Part shown: positions 2,594-64,000 of the stretch, in pieces
How the letters are laid out: each line of letters opens with the position of its first letter
Position numbering within the stretch: the stretch's first letter is position 1
Assembly: GCA_977017575.1 (NCBI GenBank)
Contig: CDRNVI010000164.1
Location: 62,001 to 126,000 of the forward strand
Reading direction: 5' to 3'
DNA: 64,000 nt
From: Paramoeba atlantica
Taxonomy: Eukaryota > Protista > Discosea
The notes under the pieces: model-generated
The model's input: only the letters and a program-made list of their open reading frames with translations
What the model was told of the DNA's origin: nothing
The model's database searches: none
Program-made: the position numbers and the translations under genes

Positions 2594-2602
2594 ATCATGA
2601 AG

Positions 2603-9130: not shown

Positions 9131-9522
9131 CAATTGGATCACAAGTCTGAAGATTCACTGAATTCCTTATAATGAACAATGTTGATTCACTCCTTTTTGA
9201 CATTCACACTTTCACTAATCTTTCACTGAAATTTCAATACTGCCATCACATTGCAATTGTTGTTGCAATGTCTCTTGAATACAAACAATAAATTATTCTT
9301 ATTTCCCTTTAATTCATTTGGTCTTAAAGAATCAAGAATTAGAAGTTAACCTTCTGCATTTCATTTATTATGAAGATTAACAAGTCATAAACAAAAATAA
9401 GTCACTTCCAAAGTTCAAACCTGATTGTTAATTCCAATGCCAAAATAGCATTTGCATGTCCCTCCCAAATATCAGAAGAATCTATATTCACCAAATTAAC
9501 TCCCTCAGATTGCATAAATTCT
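9131..9522 (-). pseudogene. Calponin-homology (alpha-actinin/filamin-type actin-binding) gene remnant
   Basis: An AG..GT-bounded block at ~9422-9522 reads FMQSEGVNLVNIDSSDIWEGHANAILALELTI, resembling the CH1 C-terminal helix. Downstream blocks contain stops, and no in-frame upstream exon was found. Confidence 0.4.
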
Positions 9523-9895: not shown

Positions 9896-11049
9896 TTAGG
9901 AGCTTTTGGCTGGTTTAATATCCACTCCCTTTTGTGAAATAAAAATAAAAAGTTTGAATAACATTTCAAGAAAATTGAAAAAGAAAATACATCAAAAGGA
10001 AAATAAGAGAAGAAAAGAGGGGAAAAAGTTCAAAGCAAACCCTTTCTTGAAATGTGGTGATCAATTCAACCACCTTTTGCTGGCCAGAAACTTTTGCAAT
10101 ATCCAAGGCTGTTCGACCACACTAGTAAAGAAAGTTCAAAAAAATGACCACATTACACACACTCCCCTCCAACAACAATAACAATTAAACAAGTCTAAAA
10201 AACTGCTCACAATAAAGTAACATCAAAGAAAATCAAAACTACTGTAAGATCAATGTTGGCTCCATGTTCAAGAAGAATTTCCACAATTTCTTCAAAACCA
10301 TTGTTAGCAGCAAATTGAAGAGCAGTCCATCCTTCCTTCACAAAAAGAAACAAAACAACAAATTATCACAACCAAAAATGAGAAAACAAATAAAAAAAGA
10401 AAAGAAAATCAACATCTTCTTGAAGATCAACATTGGATCCATGTTCAATCAGAATTTTGACAATTTCTTCATAACCTTCCAGAGTTGCAAAGTGAAGAGG
10501 AGTCCATCCATACTGATCAAAAGAAATTTTACAAAAGAACAAAATTATCGCATCACCTTCCTCCCACAACAACAGAACAATATCACAAATAACAAATGAG
10601 AAAACAAATATTAAAAAGAAAATCAAAACTTTATCTTGAAGATTTACATTGGGTCCATGTTCAATCAGAATTTTCACAGTTTCTACAAAACCTTTGGAGG
10701 CAGCATTGTGAAGAGCAGTCTGTTCAACTTTTTCTCTCCATGTTTGGCTCTCCTCCTGAACAAAAGAAGAAGTTATTATCATCCACAGAAATAAATCACA
10801 AAATTAAAAAACAAAGGAATGCAAAGAAAAATCAACTTCAAAAAAACAAAAAGAAAAAGAGGAGAGAAGAAGAAAAACAAAAGAAGAAAGAAGAAAGAAA
10901 GAAAAAAAACAATTTTTGAAAACCTTGTGTTTGAAGTCAATATCAAGTTGCTTGGATTGAAGAAGAACTTTGACAAGTTCTTCATCTCCTCTCTCAACAG
11001 CATCATAAAGTTTCTTGTTTTCTGATCTCTTCTCTTCTTCTTCTTCCAT
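9896..11049 (-). CDS. Ankyrin-repeat protein A (6 exons), ends GVDIKPAKSS*
   Basis: Exons read TALHNAASKG, YGWTPLHFA, EGWTALQFAANNG and CGRTALDIA. Phase-0 introns. Terminal exon 9896-9928. Confidence 0.85.
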
Positions 11050-11231: not shown

Positions 11232-13487
11232 ATGCGTGTTTTCAGTGTGGTTGTTGTGGGAACACTCCTAATAACATTGGCCTCTTCAGATTTTGCTGAT
11301 TATCTCAACAATATAAGAAACTCAGCAAATGTCAATTCTCCCACGCTCGCAGAGTGTGGGGTGCTCTCCCACACCTTCGATGGACAAGAAGGTGGTGGTC
11401 TTGGACCTTGGACACTCAACAATCGCTCTCATGACCATATCTCATGTGCCTTGTGTAATCGAGTGAATGTTCCTTTTGGTGGTAATTCTGCTGGCATCAT
11501 TTTGAACGTGAAAAACAATCATTTCTTCTGTTACTATTCAGATGATGGGGGCACTGGGAATGCCAACTGGTGTCATCCTCCTGGACCAAGTTCCACTTGC
11601 GTCCCTGGATGCTCGACAATGATTGGAGAGAATTTCTGGCACCCAACATGGTGCACTGGATCGTGTTTTGGACATGGCCCATATTATCCAGATGACCTCC
11701 ACCGTTTCATGGAGGCAAATCTCCAAAGTATGAACAGTGAACTAATCATGGATCCAACTGTTTACATGGAAAATCTGTACAAACCAGCGCGAGAGAGCAG
11801 CCTTCTAGCTTTGTCGAATTGTAACCATGATTTGTGGCGAAAAGTAGAAGCTGATCTGGGCAGGAAAGTCCCATTAGTTAAATATGATAAGGAGAGAGGA
11901 GACCACCCATACAGCTGTATTGAGTGTCCAGAAGAATTTGATAATTTTGGAGAAGAGGAAGAAGAGGAAGAGGACGAGGACGAGGAAGAGGAAGAAGGAG
12001 AAACGCTCCCAACACTTTTGGGTCCGCTTGCGTTCGAAGAATGTAATTTCTCAGGGAGTGTGGTTCTTGATATGGAGGAAGTCCCTCTATTTTATACAAG
12101 TGCTTCTTGTTCTTGCTCTCTCTTTCTCTCTCATCTTGAAATGAGCGAACACACTGAGATGAGAGAACCGCCCTCTCAAATTGAAAATTGTTTAGTGTCA
12201 TTTCAGTTCATTTTTCTCTCTCTTTTCTCTCTTTTCACAAAATTCTTTTTTAACTCTTCAAAAATAGGGGTGAGAATGTTGAGACAACGAGTGTGATTTT
12301 TCCTACTGACGAACCTGTGATTCAAAGTAGTTGTTTGGGACTCCTTCAAGTTCTTTCTCTTTTTTTCTTCTTTCTTTTATTCTTTTCATTTTTTTCATTT
12401 TTTGAAATGTTGAAAAAAAAAGGAGAATGGTGTTGTGACAGGGTTTTGGTATTATGAGACTGCTTCAAAATGGGACATTCTCATTCAAACATATGAAAAC
12501 AACAAATTTTCCAAGCAACTTGAGTTTCACTCACTCTTTGACAACTTTTTGTCATTCAATTTTTATTCTCTTGCAGGTCTTTATTTTCCTTTCTTTCTTT
12601 TTGATTTGATTGATTTGTATGGTCTTTCAATTTTGAGATTAATTTAGTTTTTTCAAAACAGAGAACACAGACGGAAAAAAGAGTGCGCTGGTTTTCGGAA
12701 GTATCACCCATTTTAAGATTTGTCTCTCATTGGAAGCGAATGAGATGTTCACATTGGCAGCTTTTCAAGAAAACGATGGTGTTCAAAGCTTTCAAATGAA
12801 AAGTTATGAAAACCCTGTAATTCTTGCAGACGGTTCTCCACAACAAATAGTCGCTTTTTCTGTTCCCACAGGAGTACCTTATGCTCTCTCATGGAAACTC
12901 GATCCAGTGCAAAATTTCCCATCTCCTGCAGAAAGCGGGTTTGGTTTCTTTTTTATTATTTTTTTATTTCAAACCAACCCAACATCAAAATAGAAGAACA
13001 AGATAAAAAATGATTTACTTTTTTGATGTTTTTTAGATATAAAATGCAATCGATGGTATTTGGAATTGAGAATCAGGAAAAATATTTTTGTTTGGAAAGT
13101 AACACCCAAAAGAAAGGGAAAGTACAGTTGTTCTGGCCAGGAAATTCTGTTGCTGATGAAGTCTTTAATTTTTCTGGGAGTATGTTAAGTTTGACTACAA
13201 TAAGTGAAGGAGTTCGTTTGGTTTATCAAAGAGGGTCTTCGATTTGGTGTGTTGACTTGCCAGTTGCGTTTTTCGAGAAAACCAAGAATCCTATTCCAGT
13301 TCGATTGATAGCGAAAGTCAAAAAAAGTTTGAATGTAGTAACCACCCCAATTACCCAAAGCGAAGAGGGACTCATTGTGGTTCAATACAACGAGAAAGAA
13401 TATGGAGCAAAAGTTACCTCTTTTCAATCGTTACCACTCCAACCAGGAAAAGATCTCCCATCACCATCACCACCGCCGCGGGGGTAA
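11232..13487 (+). CDS. Secreted multi-domain protein, copy 1: signal peptide, Cys-rich N-domain, poly-Glu linker, beta-rich C-domain, Pro/Ser tail
   Basis: Signal-like MRVFSVVVVGTLLITLASS. ORFs 11232, 12435, 12730 and 13023 can be joined by GT-AG introns. Three conserved paralogues. Confidence 0.85.
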
Positions 13488-13679: not shown

Positions 13680-14987
13680 TCATTTTTTTTGAGCTGGTTT
13701 GATATTTTTGCCCTACAAAAATATTAAAAAAAAACAGTTAGGAGAAAGATTCAATCTTTTTTTTCAGTTTCTAAATTAAAATGAAGAGAAGAAAAAAGAA
13801 ATCAAACCCTTTCTTGAAATGTGTTGATTAACTCAACAATTCTTTTATCTCTTGTTGTTTCCAAGACTGTGTGACCACTCTAACAAAAAAGAAGTTCAAA
13901 AAAAAAAGAACTGCCCGCTCTCAGAACATATTCACACAAAAAAAATGAAAAAAAATGAAAAACAAGATTTCGGAGATGAATGTTTGGTCCATATTCAAGA
14001 AGAATTTTCACATCAGAACCATTCTTAATAGCAAGGTGAAGAGGAGTCTCTCCCCACTGAACAAAAAGTATTTTTCAATAAAAAGATAAAACAAATCACA
14101 CACAACCCATTGCAATCAACAAAAATAAGAAAAAATAAGAAAGAAAAACCAACAGAAAAGAAAAAAAATAGAAAACAAAGAAAGAAAAGAAAATCAAAAC
14201 TTCATCTTGAAGATCAATGTCAGATCCAGATTTAAGCAGAATTTTCAGAATTTCTTCAAAACCACTGTAAGCAGCAAAGTGAAGAGCAGTCTTCCCATAC
14301 TTTAACATAATGAATTTTTTTAAAAAAAAGGAAGAAAACAAATAGTTCCCATCTCAATAATTACAAAAACAAAAACTGAAAGAAAAACAAGCAAAAAAAA
14401 AAGAAAATCAAAACTACGTTTTGAAGATTAACATTGGATCCATATTCAACAAGAATTTGCACAATTTCTTGAAAACCTTCCAAAGCAGCGTTCTGAAGAG
14501 GAGTCCATCCACACTTAACAAAAAGAAGTTAAAAAAAAAGAACAAATCATCACATTATCTTCCCACAACAACAGAACAAGAACAAATAAAAATGAGAAAA
14601 CAAATATTAAAAGAGAATCAAAACTCTATCTTGAAGATTTACATTGGATCCATGTTCAATCAGAATTTTCACAACTTCTTCAAAACCTTTGGAAGCAGCT
14701 TTGTGAAGAGCAGTCTGTTCGTTCTGAACAAAAGAAGAAGTTATTATCACACACAACCATCAATCAATAAAAATAAAAAATGAAAAAACAATGAAAAATC
14801 AACTTCAAAAAAACAAAAGAAGAAGAAAGAGAAAAAGAAAAAAAACCAAGCCGCAGCCCTTGTGTTTGAAGTCAATATCAAGTTGCTTGGATTGAAGAAG
14901 AACTTTGACAAGTTCTTCATCTCCTCTCTCAACAGCATCGTAAAGTTTCTTGTTTTCTGATCTCTTCTCTTTTTCTTCTTCTTCCAT
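13680..14987 (-). CDS. Ankyrin-repeat protein B (7 exons), ends GKNIKPAQKK*
   Basis: Exons read EQTALHKAASKG, CGWTPLQNAA, YGKTALHFAA, SGETPLHLAI and SGHTVLET. Terminal exon 13680-13712. Confidence 0.85.
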
Positions 14988-15191
14988 CTTCTTTTTTTGT
15001 TTTCTTGATGATTTTGTGTTGTGGTGAGACAGAGAGAAAGAGCAAAAAGAGAAACAAAAAACTAATTTCCTTTTTTAGTATTTTCGTGATTCTTTTTTAG
15101 GAAAAATTCCTTTTTTGTTCTAAACTTTTCTTTTTGGGTTTTTGGAGTTTATCCCTCTCGAAGAGGAAGAGAGAGGAGAGGGAAGAGAGAG

Positions 15192-17494
15192 ATGCGTGTT
15201 TTCGAGGTGGTTGTTGTGGGAACACTCCTAATAACATTGGCCTCTTCAGATTTTGCTAATTATCTCAACAAAATAAGAAACTCAGCAAGTGTCAATTCTC
15301 CCACACTCACAGACGCTGGAGTCCTCACCCACACCTTCGATGGACAAGAAAATGGTGGCCATAAACCTTGGACAGTCAACAATCTCACAAATGACCATAT
15401 CTCATGTGCCTTGTGTAATCGAGTGAATGTTCCTTTTGGTGGCGGTTCTGCTGGCTTCATTTTGAACGTGAAAAACAATCATTTCTTCTGTTACTATGCC
15501 GATGATGGAGGAACTGGTTCTGACAACTGGTGTCATCCTCCTGGCCCAAGCTCTACTTGCATCCCTGGATGCTCGACATTAATGGGAAATAACGTGTGGT
15601 ACCCAGCATGGTGCACTGGATCATGTCAATCCAGAGGACCTTACAAACCAAAAGACCTCCGCCATTTCATGAAGGTAAATCTCCGTAGCATGAACAGTGA
15701 ACTGATCATGGATCCAACTGTGTACATGGAAAATCTGTACAAACCAGCGCGAGAGAGCAGCCTTCTAGCTTTGTCAAACTGTGACCGTAATTTGTGGCGA
15801 AAAGCAGAAGCTGATCTGGGCAGGAAAATCCCATTAGTTAGATACAATGGTGGAGACCACCCATACAGCTGTATTGAGTGTCCAAAAGAATTTGATAATT
15901 TTGGAGAAGAGGAAGAAGAAGAGGAAGAAGAAGAGGAAGAGGAAGAGGAAGAGGAAGAAGGAGAAACGCTCCCAACATTTTTGGGTCCGCTTGCGTTCGG
16001 AGAATGTAATTTCTCAGGGAGTGTCGTTCTTGATATGGAGGAAGTTCCTCTATTTTATACAAGTGCTTCTTGTTCTTGCTCCCTCTTTCTCTCTCATCTT
16101 GAAGTGAGCGAACACACTGAAACAAGAGAACCTTCCTCTCAAATTGAAAATTGTTTAGTGTCATTTCAGTTCATTTTTCTCTCTCTTTTCTCTCTTTTCT
16201 CCCTTTTCTCAAAATCGTTTTTTAATCTTCACAAACCTTTTTAACTCTTCAAAAATAGGGGTGAGAATGTTGAGACAACGAGTGTGATTTTTCCTACTGA
16301 CGAACCTGTGATTCAAAGCAGTTGTTTGGGACTCCTTCAAGTTCTTTTATTCTTTTTCTTCTTTCTTTTATTCTTTTTTTTGAAATGTTGAAAAAGGAGA
16401 ATGGTGTTGTGACAGGGTTTTGGTATTACGAGACTCCTTCAAAATGGGACATTCTCATTCAAACGTACGAAAACAACAAATTTTCCAAGCAACTTGAGTT
16501 TCACTCACTCTTCGACAACTTTTTGTCATTCAATTTTTATTCTCTTGCAGGTCTTTATTTTCCTTTCTTTCTTTTTTGATTTGATTGATTTGTATGGTCT
16601 TTCAATTTTGAGATTAATTTAGTTTTTCAAAACAGAGAACGCGGATGGGAAAAAGAGTGCACTGATTTTCGGAAACATCACTCATTTTAAAATTTGTCTC
16701 TCATTGGAAGCGAATGAGATGTTCACATTGGCAGCTTTTCAAGAAAACGATGGTGTTCAAAGCTTTCAAATGAAAAGTTATGAAAAATCTATCATTCTTG
16801 CAGACGGTTCTCCACAACAAATAGTCGCTTTTTCTGTTCCCAAAGGAATACTTCATGCTCTCTCATGGAAACTAGATCCAGTGCAAAATTTCTCATCTCC
16901 CACTGAAAGCGGGTTTGGTTTCTTTTTATTATTTTTTTGACAAAAATTTCAAACCAACCCAACATCAAAATAGAAGAAGAACAAGATAAAAAATGATTTA
17001 CTTTTTTGATGTTTTTTAGATATAAAATGCAATCGATGGTATTTGGAATTGAGAATCAGGAAAAATATTTTTGTTTGGAAAGTAACACCCAAAAGAAAGG
17101 GAAAGTGCAGTTGTTCTGGCCAAGAAATTCTGTTGCTGATGAAGTCTTTAATTTTTCTGGGAGTATGTTAAGTTTGACTGCAATAAGGGAAGGAGTTCGT
17201 TTGGTTTATCAAAGAGGGTATTCGATTTGGTGTGTTGACTTGCCAGTTGCGTTTTTCGAGAAAACCAAGAATCCTATTCCTGTTCGATTGATAGCGAAAG
17301 TCAAAAAAAGTTTGAATGTAGTAACCACCCCAATTACCCAAAATGAAGAAGAGGGATTCATTGTGGTTCAATACAACGAGAAAGAATATGGAGCAAAAGT
17401 TACCTCTTTTCAATCGTTACCACTCCAACCAGGAAAAAATCCCCCACCTTCACCATCACCATCACCATCACCATCACCATCACTGCTTGGGTAA
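15192..17494 (+). CDS. Secreted multi-domain protein, copy 2
   Basis: Paralogue of 11232..13487 with the same exon structure. Confidence 0.85.
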
Positions 17495-17743
17495 ATTCGA
17501 AAATACCGAAATCGCTCACTACAAACCGCCAACCACACGATTTCATTGAGAAAAAAAGCAAACAATGAGTGTTGTCAGAGCAAACAATAAATAATCAACA
17601 AAGGATTGATTTCAACTTTATTCTCTACATAATCTCAATGTTCAATTTTCTTTTTTTTTTTGATTCTTTTTATTGTTTGTGTACCCTCTTAATGCTCTGA
17701 AAGTTCTTTCCTCAACTCTCACTCTCTCCAGAGAGTTGAGTTT

Positions 17744-19121
17744 TCATTTTTTTTGAGCTGGTTTGATATTTTTGCCCTGCAAAAAAAATGGTAAAAAAAA
17801 AATAGGAGAAATTCAATCTTTTTTTTCTGGTTTCTAAATTAAAATGAAGAGAAGAAGAAAGAAATCAAACCCTTTCTTGAAATGTGTTGATTAATTCAGC
17901 AATTCTTTTATCTCTTTTCAGATCCAAGACTGTGTCACCACTCTAACAAAAAAGAAGTTCAAAAAAAAAGAACTACCCCCTCTCAAAACATATTCACACA
18001 AAAAAAAAATGAAAAAAAATGAAAAACCTGATTTTGGAGATGAATGTTTGGTCCATATTCAAGAAGAATTTTCATATTTTCTTCAAAACCATTCTTAATA
18101 GCAAGGTGAAGAGGAGTCTCTCCCCACTGAACAAAAAGTATTTTTCAATAAAAGGATAAAACAAATCACACACAACCCATTACAATCAACAAAAATAAGA
18201 AAAAATAAGAAAGAAAAACCAACAGCAAAGAAAAAATAGAAAACAAAGAAAGAAAAGAAAAGAAAACTTTATCTTGAAGATCAATGTCAGATCCAGATTC
18301 AATCAGAATTTTCAGAATTTCTTCAAAACCAGAGTAAGCAGCAAGGTGAAGAGCAGTCTTCCCATACTTAACAAAATGAAGTTTTAAAAAAAGAATAAAA
18401 CAAATCACACACAACCATCTCCCCATCACAATTAGAAAAACAAAAATTGAAAGAAAAACAAGCAAAAAGAAAGGAAAATCAAAAAACTTGGGTTAGAAGG
18501 TGAATGTTGGATCCATGTTCAAGAAGGATTTTCACAACTTCTTTTCTCCCTTTGTAAACAGCTCCGTGAAGAGGGGTCCATCCATACTAAATAAAATGAA
18601 GTTTTAAAAAAGAACAAATAACACACACATAACCATCTCTCTCTCTCACCCTCTCCATCACATGAGAAAATAAATAATAAAAAAAAGAAAATCAAAACTT
18701 GATTTTGAAGATCAACATTGGATCCATGTTCAATCAGAATTTTCACAATTTGTTCAAAACCTTTGGAGGCAGCATTGTGAAGAGCAGTCTGTTCAACTTT
18801 TTCTCTCCATGTTTGGCTCTCCTCCTGAACAAAAGAAGAAGTTATTATCACCCACAGAAATAAATCACAAAATAAAAAAACAAAGGAGTGCAATGAAAAA
18901 TCAACTTCAAAAAAACAAAAAGAAAAAGAGGAGAGAAGAAGAAAAACAAAAGAAGAAAGAAGAAGAAAGAAAAAAAAACAATTTTTGAAAACCTTGTGTT
19001 CGAAGTCACTATTAAGTTGCTTGGAGTGAAGAAGAACTTTGACAAGTTCTTCATCTCCTCTCTCAACAGCATCATAAAGTTTCTCATTTTCTGATCTCTT
19101 CTCTTCTTCTTCTTCTTCCAT
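17744..19121 (-). CDS. Ankyrin-repeat protein C (7 exons), ends GKNIKPAQKK*
   Basis: Exons read EQTALHNAASKG, YGWTPLHGAVYKG, YGKTALHLAA, SGETPLHLAI and SGDTVLDL. Terminal exon 17744-17776. Confidence 0.85.
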
Positions 19122-20088: not shown

Positions 20089-21606
20089 GGAAGAGGAAGA
20101 GGAAGAGGAAGAAGGAGAAACGTTACCAACACTTTTGGGTCCGCTCGCGTTGGGGGAATGTAATTTCTCAGGGAGTGTGGTGATTGATCAGGAGGAAGTT
20201 CCTCTATTTTATACAAGTGCTTCTTGTTCTTGCTCTCTCTTTCTCTCTCATCTTGAAGTGAGCGAACACACTGAAACAAGAGAACCTTCCTCTCAAATTG
20301 AAAATTGTTTAGTGTCATTTCAGTTCATTTTTCTCTCTCTTTTCTCTCTTTTCACAAAATTCTTTTTTAACTCTTCAAAAATAGGGGTGAGAATGTTGAG
20401 ACAGCGAGTGTGATTTTTCCTACTGACGAACCTGTGATTCAAAGTAGTTGTTTGGGACTCCTTCAAGTTCTTTCTCTTTTTTTCTTCTTTCTTTTATTCT
20501 TTTCATTTTTTTCATTTTTTGAAATGTTGAAAAAAAAAGGAGAATGGTGTTGTGACAGGGTTTTGGTATTATGAGACTGCTTCAAAATGGGACATTCTCA
20601 TTCAAACATATGAAAACAACAAATTTTCCAAGCAACTTGAGTTTCACTCACTCTTTGACAACTTTTTGTCATTCAATTTTTATTCTCTTGCAGGTCTTTA
20701 TTTTCCTTTCTTTCTTTTTGATTTGATTGATTTGTATGGTCTTTCAATTTTGAGATTAATTTAGTTTTTTCAAAACAGAGAACGCGGATGGGAAAAAGAG
20801 TGCACTGATTTTCGGAAGTATCACCCATTTTAAAATTTGTCTCTCATTGGAAGCGAATGAGATGTTCACATTGGCAGCTTTTCAAGAAAACGATGGTGTT
20901 CAAAGCTTTCAAATGAAAAGTTATGAAAACCCTGTAATTCTTGCAGACGGTTCTCCACAACAAATAGTCGCTTTTTCTGTTCCCAAAGGAATACTTCATG
21001 CTCTCTCATGGAAACTAGATCCAGTGCAAAATTTCCCATCTCCTGCGGAAAGCGGGTTTTGTTTCTTTTTATTATTTTTTTTTATTGCAAGCCTAGAGAA
21101 GAAGAACAAAAAAATGATTTACTTTTTTGATGTTTTTTAGATATAAAATGCAATCGATGGTATTTGGAATTGAGAATCAGGAAAAATATTTTTGTTTGGA
21201 AAGTAACACCCAAAAGAAAGGGAAAGTGCAGTTGTTCTGGCCAGGAAATTCTGTTGCTGATGAAGTCTTTAATTTTTCTGGGAGTATGTTAAGTTTGACT
21301 GCAATAAGTGAAGGAGTTCGTTTGGTTTATCAAAGAGGGTATTCAATTTGGTGTGTTGACTTGCCAGTTGCGTTTTTCGAGAAAACCAAGAATCCTCTTC
21401 CCATTCGATTGATAGCGAAAGTCAAAAAAAGTTTGAATGTAGTAACCACCCCAATTACCCAAAACGAAGAGGGATTCATTGTGGTTCAGTACAAGAATGA
21501 ACATGGAGCAAAAGTTACCTCTTTTCAATTGTTACCACTCCAACCAGGAAAAAATCCCCCATCTCCAAGTCCACCATCACCTTCATCACCATCACTGCTT
21601 GGGTAA
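19331..21606 (+). CDS. Secreted multi-domain protein, copy 3
   Basis: Paralogue; ATG at 19331 within ORF 19274..20413. Confidence 0.85.
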
Positions 21607-52554: not shown

Positions 52555-54685
52555 ATGGGAGAAAAGAGGAAACGTGATGAAAACAGCGGAGAAGAAGAGT
52601 TGGAAAACAAGAGAAAGAAGGAAGAAAAGCCGATTGAAAAAGGAAAAGAAGAAGAAGAAACAGAAAGGAAAGAGTGTGAAGAAAGGAGAGGATTTGAATG
52701 TTTGATTTGTTTTGAAATGATGAGATGGGAAAGAGAACCGAGATCATTACCTTGTGGCCACTCTTTTTGCTCTGATTGTCTCAACAAACTCTTCTTCTCC
52801 TCTCAACAAACTTCAACTTCAACTTCTGAGAGTGGTGATGGTGGTGATGGTGATGATGGTGAGAGTGATGGTGGTCCCAATCTTTTTCTTTCTCCTCTTC
52901 AAGTCGATGGTTCTTCTTCTTCTTCTTCTTCTTCAAGTTCAAGTTGTTGTTTGAGTTATGGTGGGAAGAAGAAGAGATGTTGTCCAGTTTGTCGAAAAGA
53001 GATTGAAGGAGAAGGAGGAGGAAGATGTGAAACAATTGGATCATTTGATTCCAATTATTTAATTCCTGAAACAATTGATGTGATTGAATCTTCAAAGATT
53101 CCTTCTTTCTGTATTCCTCCAACTCCATGTTTTTCTTTTCTTTTGTGTTTTCAAATGAAACAATTCACCTCACTCACCCACCCACCACAAACACAAAGAA
53201 AATACCCCCTCATTAACAAAGTAAACAGATGAAACAAAAGAATGTGTGAATTTCAGAAAGTGTGGAGAGCGAACTTCAATGTATTGTTCTGACTGCAAAG
53301 TTTTCATTTGTGATTCTTGTGAACAATCTCATTCCTCCAATATTTTCTCTCAAAACCACAAACGTGAAAACCAACAACAAGAAGGAAGAAACCAACAACA
53401 TGAGAATGATGAAGGATTAGAAAGTTTGAAAAAGAAACACTGTTTAACTCACCCATCTGAGAATTTGAGTGGGTTTTGTTTTGAGTGTTCTCTTTTTGTT
53501 TGTTTGGATTGTGTTCTTGAAATTCATTGTGAACATCAACAGAATGTTTATTCGTTAGAAAAGAGTGGTTTGAGAAAGAGAAACGAGATTTTGAAGATTG
53601 GAGTTGGATTGGAAAAGAGATTGGAGTTTGTTGAAAAGGAAACAAGAAAAGTAAAACAAGAGATTCAAGAATTAGAAGAGAAATTAATGAACAAGAAAGT
53701 GATGAAGAAAGATTTAGATTTAGAGAAAGTTGATTTGAGAATGAGGTGTGATACAATTCTTAGATTGTCTCAAACTCCAACAACTGATTCTCTTTTCGAT
53801 GAAGATCTCTTTTCAACTTTTCTTCAAATTGCGAATGATCTTATTGATGAACTTGATGTTTCACTTTTGAATCGAAAAAAGAAAGGAGTGATTGGTAATC
53901 GAATGGAATTTATTTCTTCATTTTGTTGTGATGAAAAACCTTGGGGAATTGTTGAGAACATTGATGGTAACTTTATTGTTTGTCATGATAGAAGGAAGTT
54001 AGGAATTAGAAACAAAGAAGGATCTTTGATTCAAACTCTCAAAGTTGATGGGGGTTTTATTGATGTTGCAATTGGGTTGAATGATGAGATTGTATGTCTC
54101 AACCAACTACAATCGAAAGTGATGGTGTTGAACAAAGAAGGTTATTTGATAAGATCATTTGGATGTGAAGGTTCTGAACCTGGTCAATTCAACAAATCAC
54201 GTGGGATTGATGTTGATGAAGAAGGTAGAATTATTGTTGTTGACACCCTGAATCATCGAATTCAAGTGTTTAGTTATGATGGATGTTTTATTCGATGTTT
54301 TGGAACTCGTGGTTCTTCTGAAGGTCAATTTGACCATCCTTGTGGTGTAGTAGTTGATGGAGATGGTAATCTTGTTATTTCAGATAATTGGAATCATCGA
54401 ATTCAAGTGATGGGAATTGAAGGAAATTTTATTCGAACTTTTGGAGAAAGAGGATCAAAAGATTCTCAATTGGAGAATCCAACAGGTGTTGATGTTGATG
54501 GGAATGATCGAATTATTGTTGGTGAATGGGGAAATGGGAGAGTGAGTGTATTTGAGAAAGATGTAACTTTTCTTTTTTCTTTTGGATTTGGGAAGATGAA
54601 GAATCCTTTTGGGGTTGGTGTACATTCATCTGGTTCAATTTTAGTTTCAGAACCAGATCAAAACTCAGTTCAATTGTGGAAATGA
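52555..54685 (+). CDS. TRIM-NHL protein, copy 1 (RING, 2 B-boxes, coiled coil, NHL repeats)
   Basis: CLIC..PCGHSFCSDC...CPVC; B-boxes; repeated GQF..P.GI.VD..G.IIV.D..NHRIQV; one intron. Confidence 0.92.
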
Positions 54686-55368
54686 TGGTTCTTCCTGAGT
54701 TTCAAACTATCGAAGAAAATTCGTCACTAACCAAACCAAACCTTTTTTCTTTTTTTGGTTGAATTTTTCTCTCCAACTCTCACATTTCGGATGTGTGACA
54801 CCTCGGAGATGTTTTGGAGAATTATTGAGAAAGTTTTCCAAGTGAAAATATCAAGGTTGTCTTGAAAACTTTCTTTCCTTTTTTCTATTTTTTTTAATCT
54901 TACATTTGTTTGTTTTTGGTTGAGTTATTTCCTTTCTTTTGTTATTTTTTTTTCTTTTCTCTTTCTGTTGATCTTCTTTATTTTGAATTTAATTTTGAAG
55001 TTTTTTAGATTTCAAAGATAATTTAATTTCTTGGACTTGGGGGAAAAACTGGAAATACTTCTTTCTCTTTTTAGAGCAATCAGGTTTCTCTTCTTTTCTT
55101 TATTTCATCAAAAAATGATACCATTTTTTTTGAAATTTTTTCCTTTTTCTTTAGGACTGGAAAGAATCTCTTTTTTTCGAATTTGGTTCTCGTTAATTCC
55201 TCGAGACCAATTGAAATGGGAAAAATAAGAAAGATTTATTATTTGGTTTTGATCGGGTTTTCGGCGAAAGGAAATTTTCTCAGAAAGTTGTTCGGCGATC
55301 CAGAAAAGTGATTTCCGGATTCATTGTTTGTCATGGGAATATTCTGTGGAACATTCAAGACTTCAACG

Positions 55369-55380
55369 CTCCCCCTATTC
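55369..55380 (-). other. Polypurine tract GAATAGGGGGAG of the gag-only element
   Basis: Immediately precedes the 3' LTR on the minus strand. Confidence 0.8.
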
Positions 55381-56203
55381 CTGTGATTGAACAATGTGTT
55401 CGGAGTCACACGTGCGGAAGGATAATTTCGTGTTTTTATCCAGCTTAGAAATGCCACCTGGCCAGAATGGACTTCCAATATTCCTGCCTTTGTTTCCTAC
55501 ACTGGGTCGATGCCTCTATGTGCTCCATGTCAACAGGTGGCTTTGGGTCGAAATCATCCCTCCAGCCAAGGATTGGGTTTTGGTTTGAATGAGTCAGGGT
55601 TATTTGAATTCCACATTAGACTTTGGAGTTTTCGAATCGCGAGAAGTTCGAGTCGTCAAGGTTCAGTCAAAAAAAACAAAATATGGCAAAAGGGAAAAAC
55701 CACACAAGTGGAAAGCCCTTGCTTTTGAGGGAAAACCGGGACAAGCACGGCGCAAAAAACCCTCAGGTGAGAAGGAGTTGTTCAAAGATTCGAGATGGTC
55801 GAAAAGGGATAATTCTTTCGTTTGTTCGATTTTCTGTTTCGAGAGTCTGGAAACAGATTGGTTAGTCAAAAATAATGAAAGAAAGAACCTTTGTTGTGAT
55901 GAATGTTTGAGATGAGATCGAGAAGAATAAAAGAGAAGAGTTGAAGAAGAAGTAGTTGTTGTTTCTCCCCCTGCTCTGCTCTTTTGTGGTTTCGAGTCGA
56001 GAGGCATTTCGAGTTTGAAAAACGAGTCATTGTGTGAGGTAAAATCCAAATAAAGAGAAGTTTCTCCCCCATTTTCCTTATTTGTTCAAAAGAAGTTGTT
56101 GGACGTTTTTGGGTCGAACCAGCTTTTCGCCAAAAAGCAAAGAGCGAGAAGGTGGTGGGAAAGAAAAGAATGGAGAGAAAAAAAATCAAAGAGGTTTATG
56201 TGA

Positions 56204-57079
56204 TTAGTCAAACGAGAACCCATCGATATCATCATAAGCTTCTTGGATCGCATGGACTTGTTCGTCTTTCGATTCTTCTTCTTGTTTGCCTTCTGCAAGA
56301 CCCTTTTTAAACGCTTCGTCGATCCGTTTGTTGATTGTTTCCTCCATTCGAGTTCTCCATGGCGCGTCGCAGTTTGGCAAAAAAAGACCAAGTTTTTCAT
56401 CAGCAAGACGAGATTCGCATTTTGTTCGAGGATGACCGGATTGTCGACAATAATGGCAATGGAGTTTGTCCAATTTGGCTCGTTCTTTTCCACCAATTCG
56501 TAGAACAGAGTTGGAGGTTTGAGTGAAAGAGGAAGGGTATCGTCGGGCGAGTCTTCTTGCTTTGGCGATGTTGTATTCTTCACTGACAATAAGATTTTGT
56601 CGGATATCATTGAGCGATGGGGGGAATGCCTTGATAAGGCGAAGGAAGCAAATGTTGGGGGCAGGAGCTAAGCCAGCCGCACCAAGGCGGTTTACAACAT
56701 CATCGAACCGAACGAGAAAGGACTCAACATCTTCTCCTTCTTTGTGTTGAAAGTTGACAAATTCTTCGTTCAGATCAAGTTGATTAGGGAGTGTGTCATG
56801 ACGGAATTCGTCTCGTAGATGTTGCCAGAGTTCTTGTGCTTGATGGTGTCGAAAGATTCGAGCTATGCTGCTGTAGAGGTTTCCAAGAGACTTTAGCAGT
56901 TCATTAAACGCTTTTAATCGCATATCTTGTTGTTTTTGATCGTTTATAGACTCCCAATCGTTTGATTGATGGTCAATTGCACCAAAAACACCTTTGGCTT
57001 GGAGATGTCCGATCATCTTGAAGGACCAATCGTGCCAGTTGTCAGGTTGAAACTTTGGAAGGAATTCATCTTTACCCAT
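56204..57079 (-). CDS. copia-type Gag (UBN2-like domain plus CCHC zinc knuckle), 291 aa
   Basis: FQPDNWHDWSFKM N-terminal motif; ELWQHLRDEF..EGEDVESFLVRF; CHYCRQSGHPRTKC. Confidence 0.9.
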   Translation of the reverse strand: MGKDEFLPKFQPDNWHDWSFKMIGHLQAKGVFGAIDHQSNDWESINDQKQQDMRLKAFNELLKSLGNLYSSIARIFRHHQAQELWQHLRDEFRHDTLPNQLDLNEEFVNFQHKEGEDVESFLVRFDDVVNRLGAAGLAPAPNICFLRLIKAFPPSLNDIRQNLIVSEEYNIAKARRLARRYPSSFTQTSNSVLRIGGKERAKLDKLHCHYCRQSGHPRTKCESRLADEKLGLFLPNCDAPWRTRMEETINKRIDEAFKKGLAEGKQEEESKDEQVHAIQEAYDDIDGFSFD

Positions 57080-57110
57080 GACTTGTGAGACTTTGTATGA
57101 AATAAAGAAG

Positions 57111-57124
57111 GCTAACTTCTAATC
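57111..57124 (-). other. Primer-binding site GATTAGAAGTTAGC, complementary to tRNA-Arg(UCU) positions ~27-40
   Basis: Abuts the 5' LTR end. Its complement GCTAA-CTTCTAA-TC carries anticodon loop TCT; one G:U pair is needed. Confidence 0.7.
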
Positions 57125-57705
57125 CGTTAATTCCTCGAGACCAATTGAAATGGGAAAAATAAGAATGATTTATTATTTGGTTTTGATCGGGTTTTCGGCG
57201 AAAGGAAATTTTCTCAGAAAGTTGTTCGGCGATCCAGAAAAGTGATTTCCGGATTCATTGTTTGTCATGGGAATATTCTGTGGAACATTCAAGACTTCAA
57301 CGGTTCTCAAAAACGGATTTCAACAAACTTGTGAACTTTTCTCATTTGGGAATGTTTCAAACAAAGAGAGGTTGTTCATTTGATTCTCTTTTTTTGAAAA
57401 ACTTTTTTTTTCTCATTTCTTTCTTGAAGTGTGAAGTGTAAACTCCTTTTTCTTGCGAACAAAAAGAATTGGTGATTCGAAAAGAAAAAGATCAAAGAAA
57501 AGGTAATCTCTGTTTTTTGAAAAAATGAGCTTTTTGTTGAACCTAAAATTATCCAAAATGAAGGTCAACAACTGAGGGAATTTGAACAAGGAACAAAAAG
57601 GTGCCCTCCAAAAGAGAGGTTGGTTTTTAGATTGGGACCCTTCTTCACCATGAAATTAAAACACAAAAAAAAGGTTGAGTTGAGAAGAAGAAGAAAAAAA
57701 TAAGT

Positions 57706-57776
57706 TGCGCCGGCCGGGAATCGAACCCGGGCCTCCCGCGTGGCAGGCGAGAATTCTACCACTGAACCACCGGCGC
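57706..57776 (-). tRNA. tRNA-Gly(GCC)
   Basis: 71-nt cloverleaf GCGCCGG..CTCGC-CTGCCAC-GCGGG..GGTTCGATTCCC..CCGGCGC-A, followed by an oligo-T terminator. Confidence 0.95.
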
Positions 57777-58753
57777 ATTTCTTGTCAATCTTTTGCAAAG
57801 TTAGGTTGATCCGCCCAACTCCAATTCAACAACAACACTTCATTTTCTTTTTGGTTTCTTTTCTTCTTTCGATTTATTGGACAATGAGAAAAGGGGAACA
57901 TGAAGGAAAGGTGAAAAAGTTTGTTCTTTTCTCTTTCCAAAATTTCACAACTTATCTCTTCTTCCAGATCCAAATCAAGGTGTAAAAAATGAATTTTGTG
58001 GAAAAGTTGTGGGAATATTCTTCTTCACCATTCCTTACACCCATCAAGAGAGTTTTGGAGTGGATTTTTCTTGACAGAAGGGTTGAGAGACGTGATGTAA
58101 TGATTTGGATCACCAAAGGTTTTTTTCTTGTCTCTCTGAATGATCTAAGTTTTTAGGGAAAAATATTTTACTCTTTTTCTCTTTTGAAAGTCAAAACAAG
58201 GTCATTCTCATTCCTGAAGAGGATTTCCAAGACTGTGTTGAAGGAATTGATCTCCGAAAGTGGATCTATTTTGGTTGATTGTGGCTGGAAATGTTCTTCC
58301 TGAGATTCTTAGATTCGAACTGACCAAACCAATTTCTTTTTTGGTTGAAGTTTTTCGATTCAAAGAAATCTTTTCTCACATTTCTTTTCTCGGGATCAAA
58401 ATCAGTCCACTTGCAGAAATGAGAGTCAACCTGCATGAAAAGATTTGGATTCCTTTCTTATTTTATTGGTTATTCATTCTTTTTCGTGCAAACACCAGCC
58501 CCTTTGAAGTTTTGGAGAGAGTCCTGGGAAATTTTAGGTTGTGTGGTTTTCTTTCTCTTTCTTTTTTCTTATCTTTCTCTTTGATTTGATTTTCAAGAAT
58601 CATGCGATTTGGTTCTCCAAAACAACTGAGGGAATTTGAACAAGGAAAAAAAAGGTGATCTCCAAAGAGAGGTTGGTTTTCAGATTGGGACCCTTCTTCA
58701 CCATGAAATTAAAAACAAAAAAAAAGGTTGAGTTGAGAAGAAGAAAAAAAAGT

Positions 58754-58824
58754 TGCGCCGGCCGGGAATCGAACCCGGGCCCTTCGCGTGGGAGGCGAAG
58801 ATTCTACCACTGAACCACCGGCGC
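58754..58824 (-). tRNA. tRNA-Gly(CCC)
   Basis: Same body; anticodon arm TTCGC-CTCCCAC-GCGAA; oligo-T terminator. Confidence 0.95.
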
Positions 58825-60254
58825 ATTTCTTGACAATCTTTTGCCAAGTTAGGTTGATCGGCCAACTCTCATTTTCTTTTTGGTTTCTTTTCTTCTTTCA
58901 ATTTATTGGACAATGAAAAAAGGGAACATGAAGGAAAGGTGAAAGAGTTTGTTCTTTTCTCTTCCAAATTTTACAACTTATTTCTTCTTCCAGATCCAAA
59001 TCAAGGTGATTGGTCATCAATTGTCTGAAAAAAATGATAGTTTAGTCTGTGGAAAAGTTGTGGGAATATTTTACTCCACCATTCATATCAAAAATCAGTT
59101 CACTTGGGGATATGACCACGATTCTGAGAATTCCTTTCTTTATTTTATTGGTTCTTCATTCTTTTTTCTTTTCTTTGAATTTTTTTTTTGAATTTAATTT
59201 TTTAATATTTTTCTTTTCTCTTCAGGACCGCTCTTTTTTTCGAATTTGGTTCTCCAAATGGATCTCAACAAACTTGTGAACTTTTCTTGGAAAAAGGAAC
59301 AAATGTTGAACGTTTAACAAAGAGAGGTTGATATTTTATTGTTCATTTTGATAAAAAAAAACCCAAAATCTAAAATCTTTTCCAAGAAGTGTGAAGCAAA
59401 CTCCTTTTCTTTTTTAAGAAACAGAAAAACAGACACCCCTCCATCCTAAACCCCCCTCTCCAAAGACTTTAAGGTGAAGATCCCTCCGCTTCATGTATGA
59501 ATGAATTACTTTTCGGATGTGATTGAATGATCTTTTTGTCTCTTTAATCATTGTTGGCATTCCCTTCATTTTTTTGGTGCTTGTACTTCACTCTCTCCTT
59601 GGTTTGAATCATTGAGTCAATATGGAATTTCGAGGTTGACAATCGCTTTTGTTCTCCTTACTCATTTCGTTGGAGGAGACCTGGTTCAATAATAATGTCT
59701 CCCACCTCTCACCACACATCCACAAGGATTTCCTTCTCTTCTTGTCTTGACTTTGACGATCTCTCAAAACCTCTCTCTTCTTTTCCAAAAAAATTGAATC
59801 TTGGTTGACAAGGAGTCTTTGTACACCTTGGTATCTCTGCTGCCTGATAACTCTCCTTTCTCTTAAAAAACCCATCTCCCCTCAAATGTTTTTCTCTTGC
59901 TTGGTGATGGAAATATCAAATTTTAAAAACAAAAACATTGACATTGTAAAAACCATTCACTTTTTAAACATTCAAATAATTGAAGATTCAAATTGAAAGT
60001 TCTCTTTTTTTGATTTCAAATGGATCCATTTCCAGGACTCAACACACCAACATTCAGAGAATATGAATCTTCTCTCTTTCAACCCAAAATAAATGAAAGA
60101 TGAAAAAAAAGCGACCCAAATTTAGCTTTTTTGTTTGTTTGTTGTTTGTTTGTTGTTTGTGGATTTTTTGTGTTTTGGTAACCTTCTCCTCTTCTTTTTG
60201 TTTTTTTCAATTATTTTTTGTTATCGACCAAATTGGGAATTGTGTTGTGGAAAA

Positions 60255-62461
60255 ATGGGAAAGAGGAAACGAGTGAAAAAACAACAAGGAGAAGAGAAAA
60301 AGAGAAAGAAGGGAGAGAACAAGGGAGAAAAGACCAAGGAAGAGAAGTTAATTGAAAAAGGAAAAGAAAAAGAAGAAACAGAAAGGAAAGAGTGTGAAGA
60401 AAGGAGAGGATTTGAATGTTTGATTTGTTTTGAAATGATGAGATGGGAAAGAGAACCACGATCATTACCTTGTGGCCACTCTTTTTGCTCTGATTGTCTC
60501 GGCAAACTCTTCTTCTCCTCTCAACAAACTTCAACTTCAACTTCTGAGAGTGGTGATGGTGATGGTGGTGATGGTGATGGTGGTGATGATGGTGATAGTG
60601 ATGGTGGTCCCAATCTTTTTCTTTCTCCTCTTCAAGTCGATGGTTCTTCTTCTTCTTCTTCTTCTTCAAGTTCAAGTTGTTGTTTGAGTGATGGTGGGAA
60701 GAAGAAGAGATGTTGTCCAGTTTGTCGAAAAGAGATTGAAGGAGAAGGAGGAGGAAGATGTGAGACAATTGAATCATTTGATTCCAATTATTTAATTCCT
60801 GAAACAATTGATGTGATTGAATCTTCAAAGATTCCTTCTTTCTGTATTCCTCCAACTCCATGTTTTTTTTCTTCATTTTCTTTGTGTTTTCAAATGAAAC
60901 AATTCACCACACACCACAAAACAACAACAAACAACAAACAACAAACAACAAACACAAAGAAAATACCTCCTCATTAACAAAGTAAACAGATGAAACGAAA
61001 GAATGTGTGAATTTCGGAAAGTGTGGAGAACGAACTTCAATGTATTGTTCTGACTGTAAAGTTTTCATTTGTGATTCTTGTGAACAATCTCATTCCTCCA
61101 ATATTTTCTCTCGAAACCACAAACGTGAAAACCAACAAAACCAACAACAAGAAGGAAGAAGAAACCAACAACAACATGAGAATGATGAGGGATTAGAAAG
61201 TTTGAAAAAGAAACACTGTTTAACTCACCCATCTGAGAATTTGAGTGGGTTTTGTTTTGAGTGTTCTCTTTTTGTTTGTATGGATTGTGTTCTTGAAATT
61301 CATGGTGAACATCAACAGAATGTTTATTCGTTAGAAAAGAGTGTTTTGAGAAAGAGAAATGAGATTTTGAAGATTGGAGTTGGATTGGAAAAGAGATTGG
61401 AGTTTGTTGAAAAGGAAACAAGAAAAGTAGAACAAGAGATTCAAGAATTAGAAGAGAAATTAATGAACAAGAAAGTGATGAAAAAAGATTTAGATTTAGA
61501 GAAAGTTGATTTGAGAATGAGGTGTGATACAATTCTTAGATTGTCTCAAACTCCAACAACTGATTTTCTTTTTGATGAAGATCTCTTTTCAACTTTTCTT
61601 CAAATTGCAAATGATCTTATTGATGAACTTGATGTTTCACTTTTGAATCGAAAAAAGAAAGGAGTGATTGGTGATCGAATGGAATTTATTTCTTCATTTT
61701 GTTGTGATGGAAAAACTTGGGGAATTGTTGAGAACATTGATGGTAACTTTATTGTTTGTCATGATAGAAGGAAGTTGAGAGTTAGAAACAAAGAAGGATC
61801 TTTGATTCAAACTCTCAAAGTGGATGGAACTTTTATTGATGTTGCAATTGGGTTGAATGATGAGATTGTATGTCTTTACCTACTACAATCGAAAGTGATG
61901 GTGTTGAACAAAGAAGGTCATTTGATAAGATCATTTGGATGTGAAGGTTCTCAACCTGGTCAATTCAACAAACCACGTGGGATTGATGTTGATGAAGAAG
62001 GTAGAATTATTGTTGTTGACACTGGGAATAATCGAATCCAAGTGTTTAGTTATGATGGATGTTTTATTCGATGTTTTGGGATTCGTGGTTCTTCTAAAGG
62101 TCAATTTGATTCTCCTTGTTGTGTAGTAGTTGATGGAGATGGTAATCTTGTTATTTCAGATACTTTGAATCATCGAATTCAAGTGATGGGAATTGAAGGA
62201 AATTTTATTCGAATTTTTGGAGAAAGAGGATCAAAAGATTCTCAATTGGAGAATCCAACAGGTGTTGATGTTGATGGGAATGGTCGAATTATTGTTGGTG
62301 AAGGAGGAAATGAGAGAGTGAGTGTATTTGAGAAAGATGGAACTTTTCTTTTTTCTTTTGGATTTGGGAAGATGAAGGATCCTTTTGGGATTTTTGTTCA
62401 TTCATCTGGTTCAGTTTTAGTTTCAGAACTAAATCAAAAATCACTTCAATTGTGGAAGTGA
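60255..62461 (+). CDS. TRIM-NHL protein, copy 2
   Basis: Close paralogue of 52555..54685; ATG at 60255. Confidence 0.92.
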
Positions 62462-62830
62462 TTTTGAGAAAATTTGTCGCCCAACCAAACCAATTTTTTT
62501 GGTTGGATTTGGTGTTTGCACGAAATATTTTTTTCACTTCAAAGAAATCTTCTCTCACATTTCTTCTCTCTGATGAGCACTGTGTCAAAAAGAATTGGTG
62601 ATTCGAAAAGAAAAAGATCAAAGAAAAGGTAATCTCTGTTTTTTGAAAAAATGAGCTTTTTGTTGAACCTAAAATATCTAAAATGAAGGTCAACAACTGA
62701 GGGAATTTGAACAAGGAACAAAAAGGTGATCTCCAAAAGAGAGGTTGGTTTTTAGATTGGGATCCTTCTTCACCATGAAATTAAAAACAAAAAAAAAAGG
62801 TTGAGTTGAGAAGAAGAAGAAAAAAAAAGT

Positions 62831-62901
62831 TGCGCCGGCCGGGAATCGAACCCGGGCCTCCCGCGTGGCAGGCGAGAATTCTACCACTGAACCACCGGCG
62901 C
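62831..62901 (-). tRNA. tRNA-Gly(GCC)
   Basis: Same sequence as 57706..57776. Confidence 0.95.
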
Positions 62902-63479
62902 ATTTCTTGTGAATCTTTTGCAAAGTTAGGTTGATCCGCCAAATCCAATTCAACAACAACACTTCATTTTCTTTTTGGTTTCTTTTCTTCTTTCGATTGA
63001 TTGGACAATGAGAAAAGGGAACATGAAGGAAAGGTGAAAGAGTTTGTTCTCTTTCCAAAATTTCACAACTTATCTCTTCTTCCAGATCCAAATCGAGGTG
63101 TGATCGTTTATTTTGTGGAAAGTTGTGGGAATAACCCATTCAGGACTGTTTTGGAGTGGATTTTTCTTGACAGAAGGGTTGAGAGATGTGATGCACCAAA
63201 AGGTTTTTTTTCTTGTCTCTCTGAATGATTTGAGTTTTTAGGGAAAAATATTTTACTCTTTTTCTCTTTTGAAAGTCAAAACAAGGTCATTCTCATTCCT
63301 GAAGAGGATTTCCAAGACTGTGTTGAAGGAGTTTCTTCAAAGGGGCCGGTGTTTGCGATTTTCTTCTCCAAAATGGAGATCAACAACTGAGGGAACTCGA
63401 ACAAAGAACAAAAAGGTGATCTCCAAAGAGAAATTAAAACAAAAAAAAAGGTTGAGTTGAGAAGAAGGGGGAAAAAAGT

Positions 63480-63550
63480 TGCGCCGGCCGGGAATCGAAC
63501 CCGGGCCCTTCGCGTGGGAGGCGAAGATTCTACCACTGAACCACCGGCGC
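63480..63550 (-). tRNA. tRNA-Gly(CCC)
   Basis: Same sequence as 58754..58824. Confidence 0.95.
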
Positions 63551-64000
63551 ATTTCTTGTGAATCTTTTGCAAAAGTTAGGTTGATCCGCCAACTCCAATT
63601 CATCATTTTCTTTTTGGTTTCTTATCTTCTTTCGATTTATTGGACAATGAAAAAAGGAAACACGAAAAGGGAAAGTTTGTTCCTTTCTCTTTCCAAATTT
63701 TACAACTTATTTCTTCTTCCAGATCCAAATCAAGGTGATTGGCCATCCATTGTCTGAAAAAATGATAGTTTATTCCGTGGAAAAGTTGTGGGAATATTCT
63801 ACACCACCATTCAGATCAAAAATCATTTCACTTGGGGATATGACCACGATTCTGGGAATTCCTTTTTTTATTTTATTGGTTCTTCATTCTTTTTTCTTTT
63901 TTCTTTTTTCTGTTAATTTCTTTTTTTGAATTTAATTTTTTAATATTTTTTCTTTTCTCTTCAGGACTGGAGAGAATTTCTTTTTTTTCGAATTTGGTTC

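Follow-up and report, generated by a model that had tools for sequence, protein, structure and literature searches.

A gag-only Ty1/copia-type element of Paramoeba atlantica whose long terminal repeats begin and end with CG

Introduction

No cis signal of retroviral and long terminal repeat (LTR) retrotransposon integration is more conserved than the 3'-terminal CA. A 64,000-nt stretch of DNA from the protist Paramoeba atlantica (contig CDRNVI010000164.1, positions 62,001 to 126,000; hereafter the window) contains a 2112-bp LTR element on the minus strand, the window element, whose two LTRs both begin and end with CG. This locus raises the question of whether such ends are genuine and, if they are, which machinery inserted them. 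An earlier note, made from the sequence alone, had described a young element with CG...CG ends, had considered these ends unlikely to be the product of post-insertion decay, and had taken them to imply an integrase with altered end specificity encoded elsewhere. In the present analysis, we compared the window element with a transcript, with further insertions and with pol-encoding relatives. The explanation that we favor, to which we assign a probability of roughly 85%, is that the window element is a gag-only member of a Ty1/copia clade, that its CG...CG ends are common to pol-encoding relatives, and that it is mobilised in trans.

Structure and ends of the window element

The LTRs of the window element were identified by a repeat finder as direct repeats of 178 nt that are identical at 177 positions (99.4%). 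Both begin with CGTT and end with AACG, on either strand, and the repeat limits are exact because the neighbouring bases on the inside of the two repeats are not the same. Within the window, the 30-nt start of the LTR was found at these two places alone, whereas shuffled sequences gave an expectation of zero. The sole long open reading frame (ORF; 57079..56204) encodes a copia-type Gag and runs on the minus strand. The element was accordingly assigned to this strand, on which it is arranged as 5' LTR, primer-binding site (PBS), 30-nt leader, gag, approximately 820 nt of non-coding DNA, polypurine tract (PPT) and 3' LTR (Table 1). The zinc knuckle of the window Gag has the pattern CX2CX4HX4C. 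In the alignment with the relative P0010, the window Gag ends exactly where P0010 runs on into a DSGA protease motif. The window element has no protease, integrase or reverse transcriptase (RT), and tblastn revealed no similarity to pol in it. The window copy is a non-autonomous, gag-only member of a Ty1/copia-type clade. A new copy derives both of its LTRs from a single RNA, so the four CG ends on this one copy mean that CG was already present in the template.

Table 1. Positions of the features of the window element and of further insertions with CG...CG ends
Feature	Sequence	Coordinates	Strand	Basis or remark
Target-site duplication (TSD), left, GTTCT (+ strand)	window	55186..55190		same 5-mer at 57303-57307
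3' LTR, 178 nt, minus-strand reading CGTTGAAG...TTAACG	window	55191..55368	minus	repeat family D1
Poly(A) site in 3' LTR	window	55217	minus	transcript contig L001 ends here, then untemplated A's
AATAAA in 3' LTR	window	55235-55240	minus	LTR position 129
PPT GGAATAGGGGGAG, immediately upstream of 3' LTR	window	55369..55381	minus	identical tract at LTR start in L002, L006, L005
Non-coding internal region	window	55382..56203	minus	LTR-proximal ~400 nt match 3' untranslated region (UTR) of pol-encoding relatives
Intact gag ORF, 291 aa, copia-type, CCHC knuckle	window	56204..57079	minus	PF14223 at 6e-12
Leader, PBS to gag start codon	window	57080..57109	minus	sequence reading; ~81% identical to L007 equivalent
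PBS GATTAGAAGTTAGCC, 15 nt	window	57110..57124	minus	position next to 5' LTR and conservation
5' LTR, 178 nt; U5 = 57150..57125 (26 nt)	window	57125..57302	minus	repeat family D1; transcript contig starts at 57150
TSD, right, GTTCT	window	57303..57307		same 5-mer at 55186-55190
Copy of a second gag-only subfamily, identical 187-nt LTRs, CGTTGAAG...TTAACG	L002	9767-11855		TSD AAAAA
Copy 98.3% identical to window element, at a different site	L006	9778-11885		CG...CG ends as in L002; TSD ACACC
Solo LTR	L006	15934..15739		CG...CG ends as in L002; TSD GATGG

Recurrence of the CG...CG ends in other insertions

To recover relatives, the window Gag was used in a word search restricted by a length window, which gave one protein (P0001), and in an exhaustive search, which reached contigs L003, L004, L005 and L006. 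Further insertions with CG...CG ends were found at four places, namely the copy on L002, the full copy and the solo LTR on L006, and the 5' LTR of L007. Perfect 5-bp duplications surround all three of those for which both flanks are available, and the duplications in L002 and L006 fit only CG...CG limits. The gag of the full copy on L006 is broken by two frameshifting indels.

As L002 is syntenic with the reverse complement of L006 at ~95% identity, the two contigs could be compared site by site. L002 has a single ACACC opposite the full copy of L006 and a single GATGG opposite its solo LTR. These two pairs of filled and empty sites fixed the limits of insertion to the base: the inserted DNA starts with CG and ends with CG, and 5 bp of the target were duplicated. 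For the window copy, the duplicated TRIM-NHL/tRNA-Gly unit at 60-64 kb of the window gives no empty site, since its similarity to the right flank sets in only 158 nt past the insertion. Overall, CG...CG was present in eight of the nine LTRs from five further insertions on other contigs and in nine of the ten LTRs tabulated, the exception being the CpG-decayed L005. The CG...CG ends are genuine and are used in integration.

These results bear out what the earlier note had read from the window. The repeat limits, the GTTCT TSD, the PBS and the PPT, its four landmarks for the CG...CG ends, were confirmed at all of their coordinates; the assignment to the minus strand adds to what the note had stated. 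Its argument that the CG ends are not post-insertion decay gained support from their recurrence in the further insertions, two of them with empty sites, and in distant relatives.

Transcription of the window element

The exact window Gag protein is encoded on a JGI transcript contig of 1937 nt, L001. Upon alignment, L001 was 100% identical to window positions 57150..55217 over 1934 nt and then ran on into untemplated A's. The A tail starts 18 nt past the AATAAA, and its placement indicated that position 152 of the LTR functions as a poly(A) site, which leaves a U5 of 26 nt. The start of L001 is the base after the position equivalent to this poly(A) site in the 5' LTR, and we infer that the assembler collapsed the R region at this point. 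At the single mismatch between the two LTRs, L001 has the variant of the 3' LTR; thus, the window copy, or an identical one, is transcribed. Transcripts of the window element run from one LTR to the other and are polyadenylated. With its near-identical LTRs, its intact gag and this transcript, the element is young, as had been proposed.

Pol-encoding relatives and the integrase of the clade

We found pol-encoding relatives of the window element on two closely related contigs. L005, which is cut by the contig end, contains the C-terminus of Gag, a protease, an integrase, an RVT_2 reverse transcriptase, a 3' UTR, the same PPT as the window element and a 197-nt LTR, and L007 is 97.6% identical to it over 4362 bp. 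The 3' UTR and LTR ends of L005 are 76-94% identical to those of the window element, and the LTR ends, PBS, leader and 3' UTR of the window element show the same range of identity to L005/L007. In blastn searches, the non-coding region of the window element matched L005 4138-4572 and L007 13355-13578. The 5' LTR of L007 (8710-8906) reads CGTTGAAG...ATCAACG and is followed by GATTAGAAGTCAGCC.

In these relatives, pol is arranged as protease-integrase-RT (PR-IN-RT), with the domains Pol_BBD, gag_pre-integrs, rve and SH3_retrovirus followed by RVT_2 in L005/L007. The 592-aa protein P0157 holds the whole integrase (Pfam: gag_pre-integrs, rve, SH3_retrovirus) and aligns to yeast Ty1 integrase (PDB 7z0h_W) at 2.9e-13. 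It contains both hallmarks of a retroviral-type DDE integrase, that is, the HHCC motif (H123, H128, C158 and C161) and the D,D,E triad (D194, D257 and E291). The integrase of the clade may prefer, rather than tolerate, a terminal G; sequence alone does not separate an altered from a relaxed end specificity.

Distant relatives were recovered from two JGI metagenomes, with Gags ~40% identical and RTs 51-64% identical to those of the window family. L003, also cut by a contig end, has an intact 632-aa Gag-PR-IN ORF, upstream of which ...CTACG is followed by GATTAGAAGTCAGCC, and the junction in L004 reads ...CCAACG followed by GATTAGAAGTTCGCC. L009 contains the end of pol, a PPT, an LTR at 2354-2637 reading CGTTGAAC...CCAACG, a PBS and the start of gag, and in L010 the PPT is followed by CGTTGAAC. 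A related purine run abuts the LTR start in L009 and L010, and the metagenome relatives showed junctions of the PPT with CGTTGAA and of ...ACG with the PBS. As distant relatives have the same junctions, CG...CG ends are a property of the clade and not of one subfamily. We also noted that L009 2050-3044 has one LTR between the end of pol and the start of gag, an arrangement compatible with a tandem, a one-LTR circle or collapsed LTRs.

The earlier note had placed the integrase elsewhere, and relatives that encode pol and have CG ends do lie outside the window (L007, L003, L009 and L010); an altered end preference is an interpretation of these ends. L007 has an integrase with an ordinary HHCC motif and D,D,E triad. 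The note had named TG...CA ends on other copies as a refutation of its reading. L005, with TG...CA, nominally fits this but is heavily CpG-decayed, while its sister copy L007 keeps CG...CG.

Other candidate relatives and collections contributed little. Two scans of the metagenome_contigs collection with Gag alignments found no relative; this collection is without samples carrying the family. A more distant copia element from another metagenome assembly, L008, was set aside because of its complex inverted-repeat context and undefined LTRs; part of this element is flanked by a perfect 3533-nt inverted repeat (4481-8013 and 14733-18265). The copia element at 2289-9131 of the window was rejected as a partner, as its integrase and RT are ~23% identical to those of the clade, its LTR is different and it has no matching PBS. 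This older, unrelated copia-type element on the minus strand has 297-nt LTRs that are 95% identical and start with TGTTAG after a purine run; its right LTR limit and TSD are ambiguous, and its coding region is split over approximately six ORFs.

CpG decay of the L005 copy

The 3' LTR of L005 reads TGTTGAAG...TTAACA after the same PPT and therefore has TG...CA ends. To place this copy, we compared CpG contents and the differences between L005 and L007. The observed/expected ratio of CpG was 1.01 in the young window element, 0.50 in the window outside its two LTR elements, 0.45 in the L007 element, 0.26 in the L005 element and 0.16 in the L005 flanks. Among the 100 mismatches between L005 and L007, 50 were CG in L007 and TG, CA or TA in L005, while 7 were in the reverse direction; L005 has lost 50 of the 91 CpGs kept by L007. 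In the alignment of the LTR and 3' UTR, TG, CA or TA replaces 8 of 14 conserved CpGs in L005. At its left terminus L005 has T in place of C and at its right terminus A in place of G, in both cases a change of exactly the deamination type. As L005 lies in CpG-depleted DNA and half of its differences from L007 are changes of CG to TG, CA or TA, its TG...CA ends are best read as post-insertion CpG decay of CG...CG. More generally, the host DNA is CpG-depleted with an excess of TpG and CpA, both in the window as a whole and in L005 4726-11148, while the young element stands at ~1.0. This depletion suggests CpG methylation in the host protist.

Primer-binding site

The 15-mer next to the 5' LTR was called the PBS on the basis of its position and conservation, although it is not of the classical TGG type. 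It is conserved as GATTAGAAGT[C/T]NGCC beside the LTR in L002, L007, L003 and L004, and the copies in L006 and L009 differ by one base each; in all, six elements from three sources carry the 15-mer in identical or near-identical form. It lacks an initial TGG, so a tRNA 3' end does not act as the primer. The complement of the 15-mer can be read as a stem strand of five bases, a loop of 7 nt in which U is second, UCU takes the place of the anticodon and a purine comes next, and then the first two bases of the returning stem; the T/C variation of the PBS would still permit G:U pairing. This anatomy points, less firmly than the evidence on the ends, to priming by an internal anticodon-arm fragment of tRNA-Arg(UCU), and internal tRNA fragments are the primers of copia and Ty5 (PMC5371799).

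Self-priming of the Tf1 kind was excluded, as the complementarity between PBS and LTR does not exceed 5 nt. Prokaryote genomes, scanned for a stem-closed form of the PBS complement, gave a single match, a chance, non-tRNA sequence, with no bearing on eukaryotes. In the window, AATTAGAAGTTAACCTTCTGCATTTCAT at 9337-9368 (+) resembles the PBS and leader of the family, has neither a recognisable LTR nor a gag beside it, and may be left over from an old copy.

Mechanism and alternative explanations

In the mechanism that we favor, RT and integrase would be supplied in trans by autonomous relatives of the L007/L005 type, which share the LTR ends, PBS, PPT and 3' UTR of the window element. Minus-strand synthesis would be primed by an anticodon-arm tRNA fragment, probably of tRNA-Arg(UCU), as in copia and Ty5. 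Under the standard scheme of LTR-retroelement replication, cleavage immediately behind the PPT would define the left CG end, and the point where U5 meets the primer would define the right end, ...AACG. The DDE integrase of the relatives would then join a 3'-terminal G, rather than A, to target DNA with a staggered cut of 5 bp. Once inserted, a copy would have its two terminal CpGs exposed to CpG decay in the host, and old copies would drift towards TG...CA ends of canonical appearance. A bolder version of this account holds that the entire clade has swapped ...CA-3' for ...CG-3' on both ends with a co-adapted integrase, that the tRNA-Arg(UCU) fragment is the primer and that decay masks the true ends in surveys that ignore the age of copies; we lean towards this version by a narrow amount.

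Several observations weigh against the favored explanation or limit it. Two frameshifts and at least one in-frame stop interrupt the coding region of L007, at least four in-frame stops interrupt that of L005, and no intact autonomous copy was seen among the recovered relatives. The catalytic motifs of the clade integrase show no visible peculiarity, and the TG...CA reading of the L005 3' LTR might imply that the same machinery may use TG...CA ends. The 13 tRNA genes compared with the PBS (Gly, Phe, Glu, Ser, Ile, Lys, Asp and Asn, with no Arg(UCU) gene among them) pair with it over at most 6 nt. Finally, extra bases present on the unintegrated DNA and trimmed before insertion would be invisible in integrated copies.

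The L005 copy is also the basis of an alternative in which TG...CA are the functional ends and CG...CG is a minority variant that a tolerant integrase inserts occasionally. The position of the L005 ends after the same PPT and the requirement of Ty1 integrase for a terminal CA in vitro (PMC8487063) are consistent with this alternative. It is nonetheless unlikely, as CG...CG occurs in nine of the ten tabulated LTRs, in L007 despite its near-identity to L005, and in L003, L004, L009 and L010; moreover, L005 lacks more than half of the CpGs of L007, lies between strongly CpG-depleted flanks and differs at both ends by changes of the deamination type.

It could also be asked whether a DDE integrase made the insertions at all. 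The window element encodes no integrase, and capture of the element at a break or its insertion by a recombinase would make the terminal bases uninformative on integrase. We consider this very improbable: four independent insertions have perfect 5-bp duplications and exact LTR limits with no microhomology or extra bases, and the integrase found in relatives is Ty1-like, its HHCC and D,D,E motifs being complete. A DIRS/Ngaro assignment, with a tyrosine recombinase and no target duplication, came into view through the unusual ends and was rejected given the 5-bp duplications and the DDE integrase of the relatives. That the CG ends are an artefact, whether of assembly, of misplaced repeat limits or of post-insertion mutation or gene conversion of a TG...CA element, has in its favor only the prior expectation of TG...CA by LTR finders and curators (10.1101/137141), and we give it almost no weight. 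The same junctions of U5 with the PBS and of the PPT with U3 are present in the independent transcript assembly L001, the same ends recur in a separate long-read metagenome assembly (L002, L006 and L007) and in two JGI metagenomes, and the limits set by the filled and empty sites, together with the duplications of L002 and L006, fit CG...CG only. The gag-only, trans-mobilised element with CG...CG ends shared by its clade is accordingly the explanation that we retain.

Genomic surroundings

The insertions of the family in the window, L002 and L006 sit among RNA genes, mostly of the RNA polymerase III type. In the window, four tRNA-Gly genes lie within 6.3 kb (57704-63551), with tRNA-Gly(GCC) 401 nt from the element. 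In L006, the copy sits 99 nt upstream of a tRNA-Glu(TTC) gene. In L002, 583 nt separate the copy from a tRNA-Leu(CAA) gene with an intron, and the flanks of this copy are paralogous to the region upstream of tRNA-Glu. The tRNA-rich region also contains an 18S rRNA fragment, 5S rRNA genes and a U1 snRNA gene (L006 1-1287, 6625-6746 and 7371-7531; L002 19901-20019). No tRNA gene was found near L005 or L007. The RNA-gene neighbourhood may reflect targeting like that of Ty1.

The window element lies in a duplicated unit (52555-58825 and 60135-63551) composed of a RING ORF, a B-box/NHL ORF, tRNA-Gly(GCC) and tRNA-Gly(CCC), and its right flank from 57460 on is 97% identical to 62586-62925. Together, the RING, B-box and NHL ORFs resemble a TRIM-NHL-type protein, an architecture that is usually associated with animals and is found here in a protist. 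Elsewhere in the window, three identical 44-nt stretches ~4 kb apart (13155, 17138 and 21259, +) lie in the ORFs 13023-13487, 17006-17494 and 21127-21606, which indicates a tandem array of a gene without a Pfam match. The window also has tandem repeats of ~175-185 nt at its start, a long A/G-rich microsatellite with a 15-nt unit and a further tandem repeat of 177-216 nt (62-700, 975-1260 and 10205-10720). The second exon-like ORF of a galactokinase-family gene in the window is, when searched by itself, 100% identical to an MMETSP transcript, and the next named relatives are ~40% identical. The host is accordingly a cultured marine protist, and neither an animal nor a crop. A cluster look-up of host proteins returned no names.

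Comparison with known systems

We compared the window element with Ty1/copia elements (Pseudoviridae), with yeast Ty1 as the reference. The window element belongs to Ty1/copia by its Gag (PF14223 with a CCHC zinc knuckle) and its 5-bp TSD, which is GTTCT in the window and AAAAA, ACACC and GATGG in other copies, and by the Pol order and integrase of its relatives; it also has short LTRs, a PPT at the 3' LTR and a PBS at the 5' LTR. The full Ty1/copia order of PR-IN-RT-RNase H with an RVT_2-type RT is absent from the window element, which has no pol, and present in L005 and L007. The relatives share with Ty1 the order PR-IN-RT(RVT_2) and an integrase alignable to that of Ty1 (PDB 7z0h). What sets the window family apart is its ends, which are not TG...CA: the outermost pair is C:G instead of T:A, and the joined 3' nucleotide is G. 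The TGTT...AACA ends of L005 differ from CGTT...AACG only in this outermost base pair. In vitro, the minimal requirement of Ty1 integrase is a terminal CA or A:T end, with CA at physiological cation levels (PMC8487063).

With respect to priming, the PBS of the window family, as in Drosophila copia and yeast Ty5, does not start with TGG, and its complement resembles an anticodon arm. The loop in the window family would carry UCU (Arg), in contrast to the initiator-Met anticodon. As a gag-only element, the window element resembles the TR-GAG type of plants: it has LTRs, a PBS, a PPT and a single gag ORF, lacks pol, is ~2 kb long and thus below 4 kb, and shares its cis signals with an autonomous relative. 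Its Gag is only ~38% identical to that of the relative with which it shares LTR ends and 3' UTR; the window element is therefore no simple recent deletion derivative.

The closest precedents for unusual ends are the non-TGCA copia elements of plants, in which TG..GA (Tos17), TA..TA (AtRE1), TA..CA (TARE1), TG..CT, TA..CT, TG..TA and TC..CA have been described (10.1101/137141); copia elements of Rosaceae add TG..TT and AA..CA (PMC5659011). The window motif CGCG is absent from this list (TGGA, TATA, TACA, TGCT, TACT, TGTA, TCCA, TGTT and AACA), and a survey of 50 plant genomes found the first T to be invariant (10.1101/137141). A limited search of the open full-text literature found no report of CG...CG LTR termini. 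The CG...CG family will escape annotation pipelines that require TGCA or one of a fixed set of exceptions, and in hosts that methylate CpG, decayed copies score as canonical, which biases surveys of terminal motifs. The plant elements and the window family are alike in their short LTRs, their 5-bp duplications and their loss under a TGCA filter (10.1101/137141; PMC5659011). In contrast to the plant elements, the ends of the protist clade change symmetrically, stay palindromic and are both CpG, and the trait spans Gags that are ~40% identical. In this clade, the outermost base pair could be swapped at both ends while repeated recent integration was still supported, and the clade thus offers natural pairs of integrase and LTR end for tracing the residues that track the terminal nucleotide.

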